A stretch of 63,069 nucleotides of DNA, filler included, from Choristocarpus tenellus KU-1152 (lineage: Eukaryota > Protista > Phaeophyceae): NCBI GenBank assembly GCA_964200185.2. It is 12 parts of 12 records of this genome, joined end to end, with 100 filler letters (N's around TTAATTAATTAA, not from the genome) between each part and the next. Parts side by side here need not be neighbours in the genome. Positions count along the whole stretch, not along the records: positions 46,859 to 56,018 come from CAXNAD020003932.1; 11 more parts are not named here. One strand, given 5' to 3'. Both the position numbers and the translations under genes were made by a program. This document shows, piece by piece, positions 46,859 through 56,018 of the stretch (position 1 is the first letter of the stretch; each line of letters begins with the position of its first letter). The notes under the pieces were generated by a model. The model was not told the origin of the DNA and made no database searches. It saw nothing but the letters and a program-made list of their open reading frames with translations.

Positions 46859-47040
46859 GTAAGTGAATGAAGTAATGTAACTTGAACTTACAAGCGACTG
46901 ACGTAGTGTAACTTGAACTTATAAGTGACTGACGTAGTGTAACTGTCACAAACATGTTTAAACATATCTCTGACTTGTTTGATGACGAATGAATTAGATA
47001 ACAAGGGAGAGCACCACCCCACCTTGAGGATAGTGCTCAC
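46859..47040. repeat. Dispersed repeat end with ~31-bp tandem units; reverse-complement homolog at 60149-60270
   Basis: Shared ctgacgtagtgt..tgatgacg..tagataa..gagcacc..gtgctcac. Confidence 0.65.
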
Positions 47041-49024
47041 TCCGCTAATAAACAAATCCATACCACATAAAGCAAAATACTCTATCAGAGTAGCTCTCTT
47101 TGCATATTACCAACGGTGGGTGACGGAGTGTTCTCGTTGTTCCATAATCGCTTGATGACTATTTTGATATATGAAGTTGTTGTCGAGTTGACCTTGCTAT
47201 GTTCATTGATAGTAAGTCCATTGTGATCCTTTTCTTTGCTCATCATTATTTACCATCGTGTCATTCCTGTCCTATGCAACATGTTTCTCTGTGCCACTGG
47301 CCGTGTGTGTCCCGCGATCGCTCCTCACCTAACCCTTGTCCCGTTCGCCCACTGCACCGTTATGCTTACAGCATTCAACGAAGCGACAGAGAGTGTGGTT
47401 GAGCGCACGTTATACGATATGATATATTTTCAGCACAAGCTCCAAGAAGCTATCAAGCGACAGAGGAAGAAGAAAGATGTGTCAATCGCAGATATCCACA
47501 AGATATACCAGCAGGTGAGAGAATTGTCGACATTGGTGGGATTGTCGTGCTCTACTCCTCTTCCAGTTGGGTTACAGCTGTTGCGAGATATCCCTGTGTC
47601 GAATTATTCATCCTGTAGTCGTATGTATATGTGGTTGACCGCAGACGTTCAATATCAATTATTTCTTAATTATATTATCGACGGTGTTGCCTAAACCCCC
47701 CCGCCCTCCCCCCACACATATATATATATACAAAGCTTGCGTGGTAATGACGATGCCTCATCCTCGCTGGCTGTGTGCCTAATGTTTTCCTTTTTCTGCC
47801 CATCGCAAAGGTGGGCGTTACTGCCCCGTCGAAGACAACCTTACGAAAATGGCAGCAAGCTGTGAACTCCCTGCAACCCGAGTCCTTTGAGGTACTGAAG
47901 GAAGTGTGTGAATCCACGTCGCCAGCGATTGACCGCAGTGCAATCTCCCTAAACTATCTCACGACCGAGGAGTTCACCGGCTTCACTTCTCTCAAGCAGG
48001 GGCTATGCATCCAACTGCTTGCTAGGCAAGTCAGAACGCCATCGTGTTTTATCGTGTAGGCAGCAGTAAGCACAGTTTATGCAGGTTGCAGCACATTTCA
48101 CACGAGCGTAAAATAAGTCTCAAAAGCTGACGAATTTAGTCGCCATTTTTGTGTCGAATAAAAATGCCTTCGTGGTATTCTGGTAATTCTACAGTGTGTG
48201 TTGCCTGTGTATGTGCGCTCTCGTCTTATAGGAAGTACGACAATCGAGTGATGAATATTTGCTGCAGTGGCGACCCTCCCCTCTTCGTAACCTGCGCATC
48301 GTTCTCCTTGATGCCCTTCGTGTAAATTATATTTTAGCAGATACAAGTTGCACTACGGGAAGGCTCCTACAACGAAGGACCACAAGGAGATCGAATCGGA
48401 CGCGCACATGTCTGAGATGTTTGTCTCGGGCACCAGGCAGATTGTGCCCAAGGAGGAGTGGACATCAGCGCTCCAAAGGTCTGTAAATTGTGCCATTGGT
48501 GTTGAGTATTTTGTTTTTGTCCTTTTCCGTAACTCCTGCGCACCCATACGTCACCTTCCGCCACTGCATTGTATAATACACCATCAGCGTCTTTTTCTGC
48601 ACCGCACTTACTTATTATTGCAAAATCGCCCTGAATTTCAAGCGCCACTATGGGGAGAGGACGAAGGAGGTGGCCCAACTTCTGCAGAAGGTTTCATCTG
48701 GCGACCAACAGGCGGGGCCCGTCCGCCAACTGAGGACAGACATCTCCGCGGTTGTCGAAGTGAAACCTATGCAACGGATCAGAGCCGTAAGTGTGCCTCC
48801 CGTGTTCGTAACTACAGCTGATTTGGCTTGTACCGTAATATATAGTTGATGCTTGGTAGGATTGGTTGTGGATCTTCTTCGTGATTCTGTGGCGACAAGG
48901 TTGCCTTCTGTACTACAAACCTTGCTGTTTTGTCTGTCCTCGTCTTTCATAACTAATAGTGGAAATAGTAAATCGTTTTCTTCCACTGTAGAAAACGATC
49001 TTGACCAATCCCCACCTCGTTCCT

Positions 49025-49291
49025 AAGTGCAAGTATCTTAGAGGACACGAATCTTGCCGTGTTTGTTCATTTGGGGCTTGGCTTCTCATGTGTGTTTTTT
49101 ACGACTTTTTCCTACTGCAAAATGTTTAGGAGTAGGTTAAATGTGTATGTTATGAAAGGTGTGTCCGAAATATAGATATAGACACTTCCTAACAAAAACG
49201 ATAGCCAAAATTACATTAAAATTACATCAAAATCACATCATTGTCTTTTGACCCCCAATTGGACGAAGTTCTATTTTCTAATATACTTTGA
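49025..49291 (+). mobile_element. MITE family 1 degenerate copy; further partial copies at 14457-~14695, 16676-16742, 25108-25171 and 35539-35597
   Basis: Colinear with the family consensus; possible TCCT TSD. Confidence 0.8.
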
Positions 49292-51340
49292 TCCTTTTGC
49301 CTCCAATATGCGTCACTGAAAAAAATGTATATGATTGGCGTCCTCGACATCAACGTTTTTCAAACTATTTCTCTTCGTAAGCCGCCTCCATTAAACATTT
49401 TCACCACATCAACCATATCGTTTGCTCTGCCCGATTTCCATGCTATCGTACTTCCACTACCCTCTCCCATTTTATTACGTCACCATCGTCCCCTCCTCTC
49501 CTCAACGACTTCCCCTAACCCTATCCACTACTAGATTATCGAGAAGGACTCGTCTCTACGCGCTTACCTCGCCACCTGGGATGGTAAATACCAGGATGTA
49601 CTCAACCGGGTCAACCTCCACCAGGCCCACATCGGGTGGGGCTGTGTTTGCGGCGGCGCAGAAGCTGAGAGAAACAACGGATCGGCATCAAATGAACGTG
49701 AGAAAGAGGAGGGGGGAGGGACGAAGGCGAAGGAGGCGACCAAGACGTCAGAGGGAACGAAGACGTCGAAGGGAACAGACTCCCTGACATGGAGGATGCG
49801 GACGAAGGGGGTTCTGCGGGCAGTGTTGAGGAACTTCAAAACGGCCATGGAGGGCGGAATGCGGGCGTTTGCTGTGCTGAATGCAATCCCCCACCTACGT
49901 CTCGGTGAGTAATGTACTTGTAACGGTACACGTGTAGGGCGGAGTGTAATTAATAGCGTAAGATTGGTTTCCATCCAATCCCCCGAACGGATAGATACTT
50001 TGTATATTTTCAGCGGCGCACACCATTGAACCGGTGGTATGTTGCGGGATCCCCATGTATGCAGCGCTGCGGTAGCTACCCCCACGTCTCTTTATTTACC
50101 ACAGTACGATTGTGTGTTAATAATGCATGTACATCACCGACATTTGTACCTCACCTGTACTGTCTTGCGTCGCCAATTTCGTGATCCTTCGTAACCGTGG
50201 ATTCCCGCGTTGTGTTGTTGTGCCCAATTGTTTTTTGGAATAATACTATCCTGTCTGTTTAATGCTCTCGTCCGATTACACGCGCGACAGGTATTCACGC
50301 CCAAGGTGCTCAATCACCCATATGGGCGAATGTGCCAACGCGGAGATAGTAGGCGACGAAAGGGACAAGGATCAACTATGTATCAATTGCCCCATGGCAC
50401 GGGAGGGCAGTGAAGGGTCTGAATCAGTGGATAACGAAGCGGCGGGTCGGGACAGGGGCAAGGGTAAGGGTAAGGCTCGCGCAAGGAGAGCAGGCGTGTC
50501 ACCAACAACGCAAAGCCTTTTACGTCCCAACTCACACAGCGAAACGGCCGACAAGGAGAAGTGCATGTGGGTCTCCGCGTTGTTGCACATTATACCGACA
50601 CATGAGTCGTCTCTGCGTGTTTGTTTTCGCGTTGGTTTGCACATAGATCGTGGCTGCTTGTACATTATGTGGCTTGCTCATCCTAATTACCTTGAGTGTG
50701 TCGATTTTTTGGAGGGTTCCATGGGACACGGAACTTAGTGTTTTGATGCCTACCTTCCTTCCACGAGATGTGTCTGATGAGTCTGGCGTTGTGGAGGGTA
50801 CAGCCTGACATTTTGGAGATCCCGTGAAAATATTGTGAGGAACTCACTTAAGGAAAAGATTGCCTGCACCGTCGCTTACTATGCCGCCCTTCTTGTCGTG
50901 CTGTCTGTCTACTGTGTCGTGTGTCATGATGTCCAAGCAGGAGCGAGAAAACTGCACTACACGACCTTCACCCTCTAGACCCCACGATGTCCTTAGACGA
51001 ACTTGGTGATTTCGTCTTCCGCAACGCCCCAAAGCTCGCCATAATGTCCATTGTCGCCGAGCCAAGACTGCTCACATCGACGAAGAGGCGACCAACACAT
51101 ACCTGCGCGAGATGCTTCAATGCTTGCGGGATAAGATGCATCCTCAGGGCACCATCGCGCTTTTGGCGCCCCATCCGTGGAAGGTGCATTTACACCGCCT
51201 AAACGGTAAGTTGCAGAATTCGCCAGCGCTGAAATACGGGGTGTATTGCGGGAGAATATCGAAATCAACTATGACTGTTATCATTCCGTCCATGTGTCGA
51301 TCGAATATTTGGCGACCGTTCAGTAGATGAGGATCAGGTC

Positions 51341-51918
51341 GTGTGTATTCCTATATTCTTCACTTTTCCCATGTTGTTTCATGTTCTTCATACCTTTCGT
51401 TTCCTTTTGTTTCGCTTGCTCTCTCCCCCCGGCCAGTACGTACTTATTTGTTTCATTGTCCATTCTCTCGCATGCTGGTGTTACTTGTGTTCACCACATT
51501 TTTTTGCGATATTTTCTCCTGTTATTACTTAATCTCCTAGTGTTTGCAATTTTTTCATTGAGCATTTGCCTTGCGTTCCAGACTCATTGTACTCTTATAA
51601 TGTTAGTGACACGAGATTCCATGAATCCCTGTGTATTCCAATATTCTTTACTTTTCACATGTTCTTTCATGTTCTTCATACCTTTCACTTCCTTTTATGT
51701 CGCTTGCTCTCCCCCCCCCCCCGCAAGTAACGATGTTATTTGTTTCATTGTCCCTTCTCTCACATGCTGGTGTTACTCGTGTTCACACTCTTTTGCCATA
51801 TTTACTCCTGTTATTCCTCAATCTCCTATTTATTGCATTTTTTGCGTTGGTTATTCCCCCTGCGTTACACACTCATTGTACTATTATAATGTTAGTGGTA
51901 TGAGATTTCATGAATCCC
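51341..51918. repeat. Intronic tandem duplication, 2 x ~289 bp, diverged
   Basis: 51341-51629 aligns end to end with 51630-51918; both end in catgaatccc. Confidence 0.85.
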
Positions 51919-53363
51919 TACGATAAATACTTGTGTGATGTCACTGTCAAGTTTGATACATGCCGGACCCACACGCTCCCTCCCGCCTTCTCTTCATCCA
52001 GAGGCTCTTACCTTGTCGAAGGTGGGCTTGATTGTGGAGGATCATCCCCTAACCCTAATATACAAGACGAGGAGGGGGGGGCGCCCTCAATTAGGCACAG
52101 ACAACCATCTCAAAAGCCACCAGGACATGATTCTTCTCACGCACAACGATGGGACAATGTTCACATGCAATAAGCGAGTCATAGTCGACGACATCTTCGG
52201 ACACGGGCGTGATACATCTCCTGTTGTACTCCAATCCATGATGGATGTCGAATACGAAGGTGCTGCCTCGGACATCCCCATGAGGGCCCTCCACTTCCTT
52301 GTTAACAGGTTCGTTAATAACGTCACACACATCCTTCTTCACAGAAGCAGCGATTTATTTATTTTTTATAGAAGGTGTAGGACATCGTTTAACAGTAACA
52401 GAACGAGCTGGGTGACGGTTCAGGGGCGTCAATCCATACCACGAGTTTGTTTTCCAAATCGGTACGTTAGCATGGAAACACACAAAGAGCGTGTTGCCCT
52501 GTACCGGAACATACTGCATACACAGCGAAATGATGAATCCGTGCGCAATTCAATATACCACGTTAGGGCTAATTTACGAACTGCCCTCCTGTGATAGGTA
52601 CACGAATGCGGGGGACACCGTCGTCTCCTACAGCGCAGAGAGGCACAATTTGGTGGAGGCGGCCCTTGAACGGAGCAGGAGGGTGGAGGTGTTCGTGTCC
52701 AACGCAGCGTCAAAGGACGAGGTGAAGGAGAGGATGGCCACGTCCTTCGGCCAAGCCTACGAGGAGGGCAAGTGGAAGGTAAGAAGGGTGTGCTGGCTTT
52801 TGTTTCCATTGCTTTCCAACTTGTTTGTACTACTAACCCTATGGATAGGTCTCGAGCTTGCAATTGTACTTGAGATGTTTCCTTGTGGACGTTTACACGT
52901 AGCCAACTTTGTGCATGCAGCTACCCACACCACCGCTGGAAATCGCGAGTCCCCAAGACTTTGCTATGATCGTCGGTACGTGGTAATGTCCCCATTCCCA
53001 CACAAAAAATATAAAAACATTGTGCAGTACATCACATCTTTAACCAACTAACCCTAACCCATACCTATGTGACAAAACCTTTTCGCATGGCTAACCCACT
53101 TCACTGCCACATTGTTGGACTGTCACATATAGCACGTGATGCTACAGATAGCCACGTCTCTCGCTCAAGAACGCGTGATAGGCCCTTCCTGTCTGCCGAG
53201 AGCCTCAGGGCAGACCCTCGTCCCAACGGAGACGCATTGATGTTTTGCTGAGGCCGTCCATCCTCAAGGAAAGGCGATGGGACGCGGTGAGGCTACCGTT
53301 TTCGTAACGAAGGCGGTGGCGACGGGCTTCGGCTACCAGATCGAGGTGAATGTGGTATGGAAT

Positions 53364-53704
53364 GAGTGAAAGTATCTTAGAGGGAACGAATTTTTCACTA
53401 TCCATTTGTGGGGCTTGGCACATGATGGATGTTTATGATATTTTCCGTCTCATTGGTATGTTTCGGAGTAGGTAAAAAGTATACGTTTGTGGGGCTTGGC
53501 TTCCCATGCTTTTTTTTGTTGACATCGGCCTTTGCAGAAAATTTCTCGGAGTATGTAAAATGTATACGTCGTGAAAGGTGTGTCCGAAACATAGATATTG
53601 ACACTACTTCCTAACAAACACGATATCCAAGATTTCGCCAAATCGCAACATCATATTTTGACACCCAAATTGACGTGGCTCTTCCCTCTAAGATACTTTG
53701 GCTC
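53364..53704 (+). mobile_element. MITE family 1 copy with ~80-bp internal duplication; TSD GAAT
   Basis: GAAT|GAGTGAAAG...TTTGGCTC|GAAT; the tttgtggggcttggc block occurs twice. Confidence 0.9.
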
Positions 53705-53882
53705 GAATACGCTAATTTACTAATTTTGTTGAGATTGAACAGCAGACTTTAGTTACCAACACACACGATATCCAATTTATTTTTATTCGTAAGTCCTAAC
53801 CTACCTAATGCGGCACCCAAACACGTCGTATACAAATATGTGGGCCTTAGGGGTAGTATTGCGTTGGTAGCGTGTGTGACTT

Positions 53883-54141
53883 GAGTGAAAGTATCTTAGA
53901 GGGTATGAGTTTTGTGCTGTTTGTCCATCTGGGGCTTGGCTTCTCTCGGGGTTTTTTATGACATTTTCCTAGTCCAAAATATTTCGGAGAAGGTAAAATG
54001 AATTTTTTACGAAAAGGTGTGCCTAGAACAAGGATATTGACACTTCCTAACAAACACAATAGCCAAAATTACATCAAAATTGCAACATTGGATTTTGACC
54101 CCCAAATGGACGCGGCTCTACCCTCTAAGATACTTTGGCTC
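53883..54141 (+). mobile_element. MITE family 1 reference copy (259 bp; TIR GAG(T/C)(G/C)AAAGTATCTTAGAGGGTA; 4-bp TSD ACTT)
   Basis: TIRs at both ends, flanked by ACTT...ACTT. Confidence 0.92.
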
Positions 54142-55764
54142 ACTTTTAGGCCACAATAGTGGTGCCGTCTTTGCAACCACCATCTTCGGACGATATTACC
54201 TCCAATTCACAAACATTCATGAATTGCCGTACTATAACCCCCCATCAATACCCCTCGACCCCACCCAACTCCACCGATGTCTTTATCCTCCGCAATATTC
54301 AGCCACGTTCAAGCTCGTCCTTGAATCCCGCGGAAATGGCCGTGTACCCAATCGAAGGGAAAAACTACAAGGTCGGTGGGAATGACATCCCTGTGTGGGG
54401 CGATCTCGTTGTGTGCAATTCTCGATCGGAGGCCTTCGATTGGCTCTCCCACGAAGACATTGAAGAACAATTACATCTGTCTACTCCATGTGGCCAGCAA
54501 CAGACAGCTCAAGCGTATGCTTGAGCCTGATAGGGAGGTGTGTGGGTCGGACGCAGAGCTCTACTTGCGCGTGGCAGTCACTTGCCCATTGTACTACATG
54601 CAATGGACCGAGAATGCATCCGACGCGAATATCGATTTCGCATCGGAAGTGCCACAAAGTGGAAGCCGTGATCAGGTCCTACTCCCCTTCTCTCAGGTTG
54701 GCGCTGGAGAGACGTTCGTCACTCCCGTGACCGGGAGGGTGTGCAAACCCCGACTGAAAGATGACACCAGATCACCATTCAACGCACTCCCGGGTGGTAG
54801 GGTAGTGCATTCTCGAGGGTTCGAATTGGTGGATTCTGACTCAGAATTGACGCCAATGACCACTAGAAAGCGCAAGTATCCCTCTTCCGGCACGGGTGAA
54901 AAAGGTACTGGTCGCAACGTATGGAGTGGAGGTAGTGATTCTGCCATGGAAGAGCAGGAGGACGAAGAGGAAGGAGAAGAGGAGTTAGGGTATGATACAG
55001 AGAAAGATGAAGTATAGATATAATAGTTGTAAGAAGATAATTGGGACGGCGGGCGGGTAGGAGTCATGATTTCTCTATTCTATGTGACGCATGTTTTTTT
55101 TTTTACTATATTTTATTTAAGGGCTGTTGTTGTGGCATTATTCTTCCCCTTCGTGTCATCTCTTGCGATTTATCACAACAACTCCAACAACTTGCACGAG
55201 AAAATAGATAAACGCAGATCGACGTATCGGACAGGCAGGGTGTCGTGGGGGAGAATATCGCATTGCCCAATATATCGGGCATGACTGAGATATTCGTACA
55301 AAGAGTTCGATCATCATAGTACGATGAAACTATTACTTATATGCACTCAATGTTAACTTCTTCTTCTACCTGGCGACAACAACAGTAATTGATAAACAAT
55401 CTAATAATATGGCAAAATAACACTACTGCTTCTTCTTCTTCTCTTCTTCTTCCTATTATTAAGCGTGCCAAAACTACACGACAATACACACCCGTTAACA
55501 CCAAAAACATACGCGAAGCACAAGCTTTTCATGTATGTCTACGAGTCAAAAATGTGTTCGTTCTTCTTTGTGAACTTGGTAAGTTTTTTTTGTGCATGTG
55601 ACCTACTAATAGTCCCTTACTGCTTGTACAAACCACATAATAATAACACTCGAATAAATATTCATAACTAGTAGAAGAAGCCGTATGTATATACGTATGT
55701 ACTGTATAATACAATCTGTAGTGTACCACACATATTATTATAAGAATACCAAAACCGTTACCGG

Positions 55765-56018
55765 CTCCCCCCCGGGGGGGGGGTCGAATGTCCTTATTAT
55801 ACCTTAGGCTTGGTCGAGGTCGGTTCCAATGTGCAGCGGTGCCCTCCACAAGTAGTACCCAAATATTTTTGAATAAAAATATATGTGGACCCTTAAAAAG
55901 TGCCGAAACAGTTTTTTTTAAAACACATCCCGGACCCTTAAAAGTGCCGAAACATTTTCAAAAAAAAACATATCGGTACTTTTCCGCACAAATTTCGATC
56001 ATAACCCATCCTCAACAC
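55765..56018. repeat. Repeat with a C7-G10 palindrome and ~44-bp direct repeats; homologous to 25272-25410
   Basis: ggacccttaaaagtgccgaaaca occurs twice; similar blocks and catcctcaa in both regions. Confidence 0.55.

Follow-up and report, generated by a model that had tools for sequence, protein, structure and literature searches.

Giant algal transposons that carry DNA-binding or DNA-modifying cargo of prokaryote or phage type were recognised only in 2025. In brown algae, the 21.5-kb Ectocarpus giant DNA transposon Sola1-1_Ec32 bears an accessory gene for a protein of 1104 amino acids (aa) that combines a ParB-like part with a DNA methyltransferase and is predicted to produce N4-methylcytosine (4mC) or N6-methyladenine (6mA) (PMC12477816, Genome Biol 2025). 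In red algae, the Plavaka gene PAG2 of Bostrychia joins PF01555 to PF00856 (SET), while PAG3 joins a ParB-like part to a 2-oxoglutarate (2OG) oxygenase (preprint 10.1101/2025.02.11.637652). Eukaryotic N6A methylases with a helix-turn-helix (HTH) of the ParB type have been traced to phage ParB-Tls loci, and inactive methyltransferase-like domains have been described in METTL14 and in DIRS1 copies (PMC4738411, Iyer et al. 2015). Here we report a related locus from the brown alga Choristocarpus tenellus KU-1152 (GCA_964200185.2). It lies in a window of 63,069 nucleotides, the whole stretch of DNA that was analysed, in the piece at 46859-56018 (CAXNAD020003932.1, about 9.2 kb), and the gene runs on the plus strand. 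The original prediction, made from the DNA alone, had described one spliced fusion gene of ParB/HTH, PHD finger, DNA methyltransferase fold and SET fold in which both methyltransferase modules had lost their catalytic residues. Our analysis indicates that the gene in the window is probably a single pseudogenised copy of an accessory gene that has introns and is multi-copy on large brown-algal repeats, these being most likely giant DNA transposons of the Sola1-1_Ec32 type.

Several features are shared with the Sola1-1_Ec32 gene. Both are found in brown algae, both place a ParB-like part before an N6/N4 methyltransferase part, both have introns and both occur in many copies; in addition, the Ectocarpus gene on contig L008 is divergent to an opposite-strand neighbour, which is a further likeness to Sola1-1_Ec32. 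The zinc finger, the conserved C-terminal domain and the loss of catalytic motifs reported below are absent from the published description, and the copy in the window differs from the Sola1-1_Ec32 gene in belonging to a second subfamily and in being broken. The red-algal PAG2 and PAG3 are comparable as giant algal transposon cargo that brings a phage-type methylase together with a ParB-like binder and a domain of chromatin type, and PAG2 likewise has a further domain C-terminal to its methylase. However, ParB and methylase sit on two proteins in the red alga and are detectable with Pfam, whereas in the brown-algal family they are fused and no domain rises above the Pfam threshold. No sequence link to PAG2 appeared in the exhaustive search with exon e8, which returned brown-algal matches only.

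No long open reading frame (ORF) is present in 46859-56018. The plus strand instead carries a chain of open segments, e1 to e11 (Table 1), and the gene appears only after splicing, as had been predicted. The five GT-AG junctions listed in Table 1 keep phase, and three of them are used in annotated spliced C. tenellus protein models: P0106 joins the two zinc-finger halves (e5 and e6) at the equivalent of 49905/50291, P0001 and P0041 both span the e8-e9 junction, and P0100 splices e10 to e11. Because these junctions keep phase and three are used in annotated models, we regard the spliced gene as real. The peptide blocks that had been listed for the zinc finger, the methyltransferase region and the C-terminal region were all found on the plus strand where they had been placed, as was the core of the N-terminal block (..AFNEATESVVERTLYD.., then an intron, then VGVTAPSKTTLRKWQ); the residues given before AFNEATES did not match. 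The exons also follow one another in the same order elsewhere. Ascophyllum contig L002 reads ParB-like exon, HTH region, zinc finger, e7, e8, e9 and e11, and Ectocarpus contigs L003 and L008 show the same order. Since the order is colinear in L002, L003 and L008, the exons form one gene and the fusion is conserved. The gene starts 5' of the supplied piece, since the ParB N-domain exon of the homologues is not inside it.

What the original prediction had missed is that the locus is no single host gene: it is a decayed member of a multi-copy family that is carried on a large repeat and known from Ectocarpus Sola1-1_Ec32. An exhaustive HMMER search with e8 (52004-52306) among 1.84 billion representatives returned 41 homologues at E<=1e-3 (12 at E<=1e-10), and all of the named matches were brown algal (Ectocarpus sp. 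CCAP 1310/34 and C. tenellus). When a profile of the C-terminal exon was searched, 39 more matches came up, once again confined to brown algae (Ascophyllum nodosum, Ectocarpus, C. tenellus and Hapterophycus canaliculatus). The family was multi-copy wherever it was found, with at least 6 near-identical models in Ectocarpus, members on at least 7 contigs of C. tenellus, and 90%-identity clusters of 131, 88 and 49 members in Ascophyllum. In Ascophyllum nodosum (ENA ERZ26962164), L002:1957-13403 and L004:1-11460 share 99% identity along at least 11.4 kb with the whole gene included, a lower bound since the 5' boundary lies beyond the compared span, and they cease to be homologous 870 bp 3' of the stop codon. 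The gene is therefore close to an end of a large repeat that has been amplified recently, and the near identity of the two contigs points to a very recent amplification in Ascophyllum. Multiple copies, a long repeat, ParB-like and methyltransferase domains, and a single intron-containing gene, which together mark the brown-algal ParB-methyltransferase accessory genes, were thus all found at the level of the family. The tie of the window copy itself to that family is its nucleotide identity of 83-87% to three C. tenellus contigs, through exons and introns. The Ectocarpus proteins closest to its subfamily are P0097 and P0080, with 55% identity in the C-terminal domain.

For domain searches the exons of the window were analysed singly, and contiguous homologues (P0042, P0065, P0083, P0100 and P0106) stood in for domains that span several exons. 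The methyltransferase fold predicted for 50979-52778 held up in these tests, which were run on the Ectocarpus homologues P0042:401-671 and P0065:515-745 in place of the window protein. By ESM Atlas features, P0065:515-745 matched N6_N4_Mtase clusters at 0.90, and its own Atlas model reached template modelling (TM) scores of 0.65-0.69 over 177-195 residues to N6_N4_Mtase, including phage clusters of the ParB_N + N6_N4_Mtase type. An AlphaFold2 (AF2) model of P0042:401-671, built from a 36-row alignment with a mean predicted local distance difference test (pLDDT) of 53, gave 41 Foldseek matches at E<=1e-3 with probability 1.00. All of these were DNA or RNA amino-methyltransferases, led by M1.HpyAVI (8.7e-6), TTHA0409 and M.RsrI and including CcrM, MboIIA and the rotifer N4CMT; METTL14 and MTA9 chains were also among the structural matches of this model. 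VIA-align against 48,161 PDB representatives placed amino-methyltransferases in all of the top 20 positions (Z 12.4 to 6.5), with the first unrelated chain at Z 5.5. The leading alignments were to M.MboIIA (Z 12.4, 198 residues, root-mean-square deviation 3.9 A), CcrM (Z 12.2), M.BceJIV (Z 11.9), M.RsrI (Z 11.8), the rotifer N4CMT (Z 11.6) and M.PvuII (Z 10.9), and together with HpyAVI and TTHA0409 they make up the set at Z 12.4-10.2. Solved beta-class enzymes were aligned at Z 10-12 over about 190-210 residues with a sequence identity of 10-17%. The window is linked to P0042 by 36% identity over e8 and 40% over e9 (P0042 residues 605-669); alignment A5 was made without the short e7 and e9 fragments, which MAFFT had misplaced. 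These models support the reading of 50979-52778 as a predicted beta-class N6A/N4C DNA-methyltransferase fold, with the motif IV region N-terminal and the motif I region C-terminal.

Sequence searches found no trace of this relationship. In Pfam, neither the window exons nor P0042, P0065 and the fragments matched PF01555, even with the cut-off relaxed to E<=1. PHROGs and PDB-sequence searches (phmmer and profile, with e9 and the methyltransferase region) returned nothing relevant, and none of 50,697 phage genomes was matched by e8 in tblastn. In fold and in the motif order IV...I the family nevertheless resembles the phage and bacterial ParB_N + N6_N4_Mtase fusions and M.RsrI, M.MboIIA, CcrM, M1.HpyAVI and M.PvuII, from which it differs in lacking motifs IV and I, in being split by introns and in carrying a zinc finger together with an additional C-terminal domain.

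In beta-class enzymes the consensus is [DNS]PP[YFW] after strand beta4 (motif IV) and FxGxG(T/S)T after strand beta1 (motif I, which binds S-adenosylmethionine (SAM)). At these two positions the window copy reads SIVA and YSAERHN. The Choristocarpus paralogues have SIAA (L006) and YSAERHN, the Ectocarpus proteins NVGA and FGAEHNT, and the Ascophyllum/Fucales proteins DLTR and GIGVETT, so that [DNS]PP[YFW] and FxGxG(T/S)T are kept in no subfamily (window/Choristocarpus, Ectocarpus, Ascophyllum/Fucales). The original prediction had noted the replacement of DPPY and FxGxG in this one gene and had suggested looking for their preservation in paralogues. Both are indeed replaced, and neither is preserved in any subfamily seen; the loss holds for the whole family and not just for the window copy. 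An amino-methyltransferase fold with disrupted catalytic or SAM-binding residues is shared with METTL14, MTA9 and the DIRS1 domain, which have been retained as nucleic-acid-binding or scaffolding modules. Those proteins belong to the MT-A70 and PCIF1-like clades, whereas the brown-algal family is of the unpermuted beta class. We know of no active partner for the brown-algal family.

The ParB portion of the prediction stood only in part. The ParB N-domain (DGxHR / GxxRxxA box) was not found in the supplied piece by tblastn. In the homologues a ParB-type N-terminus is recognisable by motif: Ectocarpus L008 has a ParB/Srx-type exon with LDGNHR about 0.9 kb 5' of the e1 equivalent (L008:6939-7454), P0065 carries ILDGAHR, and a further match is present at L002:5138-5377. 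Pfam did not detect the ParB N-domain in the homologues, and a PDB-sequence search of the ParB region gave nothing relevant. As for the HTH, Pfam found no such match on the window exons e1-e2, while the equivalent stretch of P0027 showed a faint, sub-threshold match to KorB (E 0.038). Considering this match, the sequence pattern and the published annotation, we designate e1-e2 as a putative ParB-type HTH. The predicted PHD finger fared similarly. In paralogue P0106 the finger is contiguous and reads C-x2-C-x10-C-x2-C-x3-H-x3-C-x14-C-x2-C, which is the Cys4-His-Cys3 ligand order. Its x3-H-x3 spacing departs from the canonical PHD C-x4-5-H-x2-C, PHD (PF00628) gave no Pfam match at E<=10 on the contiguous P0106 finger, and comparison with PDB sequences returned a faint zinc-ribbon-like match only. 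The finger thus resembles PHD in ligand order, and the PHD assignment is not supported.

An intact family protein would begin with a ParB/Srx-like N-domain carrying DG(A/N)HR, followed by a ParB-type HTH. Beyond an acidic linker would come the Cys4-His-Cys3 zinc finger and a basic stretch, then a methyltransferase fold of the beta class that lacks motif IV and the motif I glycine loop, then a conserved C-terminal domain, with an acidic tail at the end. Two alternatives bear on what these domains are. The methyltransferase-like domain might still be an active N6A/N4C methyltransferase that works with non-canonical residues, and the retained fold and the retained helix ..P.RAL.FL(I/V)NR.. before motif I, the G-x-G-x-x-T-T remnant in the Fucales subfamily and the 4mC or 6mA production predicted in PMC12477816 all speak in this direction. 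Considering that [DNS]PP[YFW] is kept in 0 of 3 subfamilies, that none of them retains the Pro-Pro-aromatic triplet which holds the target base and that the Choristocarpus/window subfamily has no glycine in motif I, we hold such activity to be very improbable. Because motifs IV and I are gone, the published proposal that such proteins methylate their own element is not favoured for this family. The other alternative takes the C-terminal domain (53253-54840) for a degenerate SET domain and the family for the brown-algal counterpart of the red-algal Plavaka PAG2, with ParB added at the N-terminus. This domain is well conserved within the family (alignments A2 and A3), and a SET fold in which NH is replaced by QW had been predicted at 53300-54640. 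Bostrychia PAG2 has PF01555 and then PF00856, the same order. By eye, the family motifs (..VWG-L-V.. with a helix, ..LY(L/V)RV..CP.Y(Y/W).RW.., and ..GE.FVTPV..) follow the SET order YxGE, IDA..RF.NH, GEEL..Y, and the strand and helix order of a poor AF2 model is compatible with SET. That model, of the e11 homologue P0083:1-172 (which lacks e10), has a pLDDT of 43.8, too poor for fold searches with it to count, and no SET was present among its Foldseek, VIA-align (best Z 2.4) or Atlas shape matches. Pfam, PF00856 included, matched neither the window exons nor a single one of 39 family proteins (about 40 members), a C-terminal profile against PDB sequences returned nothing relevant at E<=10, and Atlas features gave no match. 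Even among family members the candidate positions for GxG, NH and the catalytic tyrosine show no conservation, neither NH nor a terminal Tyr occurs there in any subfamily (A2 and A3), and the Fucales subfamily is without the GE.F.T motif. With no profile, language-model or structure match, the SET assignment is unsupported; in view of the PAG2 precedent, a degenerate SET domain is still a possibility, though one that we consider rather unlikely.

The state of the window copy bears on the choice between a transposon relic and a host gene. Exon e5 has lost 1 nucleotide (nt) from a G run near 49718, which switches the frame from 0 to 2, where paralogue L007 is continuous. Exon e7 has a 2-nt insertion (CA) at about 51075 that is absent from L006 and L007, with L006 reading through. 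Exon e11 has a 1-nt insertion (T at 54471) where L005, L006, L002 and P0100 are continuous. To read the protein from this copy, the frame would have to be changed at each of these three places. In e6 the third zinc-ligand Cys has become Arg (YSRPRC in the window vs YSCP(R/K)C in L006, L007 and P0106). Identity to the paralogues is 0.82-0.94 for exons and 0.75-0.92 for introns, region by region, with the exons no better conserved, and the paralogues bear stops and frameshifts of their own at different places. If instead the gene were a functional, expressed host gene, its three frame breaks would all have to be assembly errors. One of the breaks does sit in a G run; moreover, the frame stays open in e6, e8, e9, e10 and the greater part of e11, splicing preserves the phases and the ratio of nonsynonymous to synonymous divergence (dN/dS) is below 1. 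Yet two of the three indels (CA and T) lie outside homopolymers, a zinc ligand is lost in this copy, exons are no better conserved than introns, the sister copies are independently broken and the family is multi-copy everywhere it was found, which leaves a functional host gene a highly unlikely explanation. The comparison of copies makes a pseudogenised transposon copy the most likely identity of the gene in the window.

Several observations weigh against reading the locus as a dead copy of a transposon-borne pseudo-methyltransferase gene. The dN/dS between copies is 0.44, not 1; part of the divergence was therefore accrued under selection. This value fits a history in which selection acted on an active lineage while inserted copies decayed neutrally. 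For the frameshift in the G run, an error of the assembly is possible. The 9.2-kb piece showed neither a transposase nor terminal repeats nor a target-site duplication for the window copy, and a Pfam scan of the ORFs of L002 and L008 did not find a transposase. P0065, which runs for 829 aa up to a premature stop, comes close to the published 1104 aa when the 296-aa ORF behind it is added, and it may be the Sola1-1_Ec32 gene. On the structural side, the AF2 model of P0042:401-671 is of moderate confidence only, and the motif positions were read from the alignment and predicted strands (E43-46 for motif IV), not from a residue-level superposition. Other origins were also considered. An integrated phaeovirus gene was rejected in view of the introns, the high copy number and the lack of viral neighbours. 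A DIRS1-type methyltransferase-like domain was rejected as well, there being no reverse transcriptase (RT) or tyrosine recombinase (YR) and the structure matching the beta class and not the PCIF1-like one.

Table 1. Exons, splice junctions and repeats of the gene copy, in positions of the window
Feature	Coordinates	Strand	Description
Exon e1	47372..47514	+	Follows ParB N-domain exon outside the piece; ends with start of putative ParB-type HTH; acceptor ag 47370-71, donor GTGAGA at 47515
Exon e2	47811..48029	+	Putative HTH continuation (VGVTAPSKTTLRKWQ..); donor tentative
Exons e3 (~48341-48478) and e4 (~48643-48786)	48341..48786	+	Conserved coding blocks, limits approximate; probably a small exon between e3 and e4
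Exon e5	49535..49905	+	Acidic low-complexity stretch and first half of zinc finger (C-x2-C at 49872-49886); donor CG/GTGAGT at 49906
Exon e6	50291..50560	+	Second half of zinc finger (50291-50395), then basic Gly/Lys/Arg stretch; 3' end uncertain
Exon e7	50979..51206	+	Strand beta4, degenerate motif IV (KLAIM-SIVAEP), helix, strand ending ..HPQGTIALLAPHPW
Exon e8	52002..52308	+	Centre of methyltransferase-like domain; intact in window; junction phases fit
Exon e9	52598..52778	+	Strand beta1, degenerate motif I (GDTVV-SYSAERHN), strand beta2; intact
Exon e10	53253..53345	+	Start of conserved C-terminal domain; phase-0 junction at each side
Exon e11	54303..55017	+	Conserved C-terminal domain (..VWGDLVV.., ..LYLRV..CPLYYMQW..), acidic tail, TAG stop 55015-17
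GT-AG junction	49905/50291	+	Carry 2
GT-AG junction	51206/52002	+	Carry 1
GT-AG junction	52308/52598	+	Carry 2
GT-AG junction	52778/53253	+	Phase 0
GT-AG junction	53345/54303	+	Phase 0
Dispersed MITE-like repeat, ~265 bp	49024..49290, 53363-53700, 53882-54141		Three copies, all intronic
Tandem duplication, 289-bp unit	51342..51919		Inside intron 7; units 79-90% identical

Several exons of Table 1 have counterparts in homologues. Exon e1 shares 75% identity over 40 aa with Ectocarpus L008:8167-8286, and the last 16 aa of e2 are 88% identical to L008:10300-10347. By tblastn against L008, e3 and e4 gave E values of 5e-6 and 1e-13, respectively, and residues 50-110 of P0097 align with 48342-48521. 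The counterparts of e7 are found in P0042/P0065 and at Ascophyllum L002:9605-9706.

Repeats occur both in the introns and beside the gene. C. tenellus contigs L005-L007 have relatives of the repeat resembling a miniature inverted-repeat transposable element (MITE), but at different sites and in different orientations, so the repeat was inserted after the gene copies diverged. The tandem duplication of intron 7 is mostly missing from paralogue L007 (356 gap columns). Short tandem repeats flank the gene: one (31 bp x 2.7, 46861-46953) sits at the piece's 5' edge, the other (44 bp x 2, 55876-55974) about 0.9 kb past the stop. In Bostrychia, repeat arrays beside ParB-like accessory genes have been described as candidate binding sites (10.1101/2025.02.11.637652).

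Neighbouring genes could be surveyed in Ectocarpus, where the loci are full of N gaps and L003 is mostly N. An opposite-strand gene lies upstream of the ParB-like exon at L008:1-3841 and has PF25273 (DUF7869) among its precomputed matches; it could be the transposase of the element. An exon-wise Pfam scan of this gene returned nothing, and no mention of DUF7869 was found in the literature. A Peptidase_C48 (Ulp1-like) gene is located on L003:20883-24195, about 3.6 kb downstream of the accessory gene and on the same strand. Ulp1-like proteases are common transposon cargo. Two of the annotated Ectocarpus models deserve comment. In Ectocarpus sp. CCAP 1310/34, the annotated P0065 is cut short by an in-frame stop (L003:16328-16330) where the C-terminal domain begins; the domain runs on in the same frame to 17239, and copy P0076 has Lys at the stop site. 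P0097 (L008:10001-15335) splices e3-like exons straight to the C-terminal domain over a 2.9-kb N gap, and this splice is probably an artefact that the gap in the assembly brought into the annotation.

Returning to the accessory gene carried by a giant transposon, we propose that the intact protein would bind the DNA of its own element through the ParB-type HTH and the methyltransferase-like scaffold, and that further contacts would come from the zinc finger, from the stretches of basic and acidic residues and from the C-terminal domain. It would act without catalysis, for example as a marker, a tether or an anti-silencing factor for the element. A wider version of this proposal, which we put forward as speculative and rather unlikely, is that brown-algal giant transposons carry a family-wide dead pseudo-methyltransferase together with ParB-HTH, zinc finger and C-terminal domain (possibly a SET remnant homologous to that of PAG2), and that this protein coats or tethers element DNA so as to escape or steer host silencing instead of methylating it. 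The combination of ParB, methylase and SET would then be an ancient transposon cargo of red and brown algae.

The locus widens the family to further brown-algal lineages, with a Choristocarpus-type copy and a recent high copy number in Ascophyllum. To the published description it adds a conserved zinc finger, a conserved C-terminal domain and the loss of catalytic and SAM-binding motifs in all subfamilies seen, a loss that argues against the published suggestion of a protein methylating its own element. For annotation, the lesson is that loci such as this one are to be read as pseudogene copies of a transposon and not as chromatin genes of the host.

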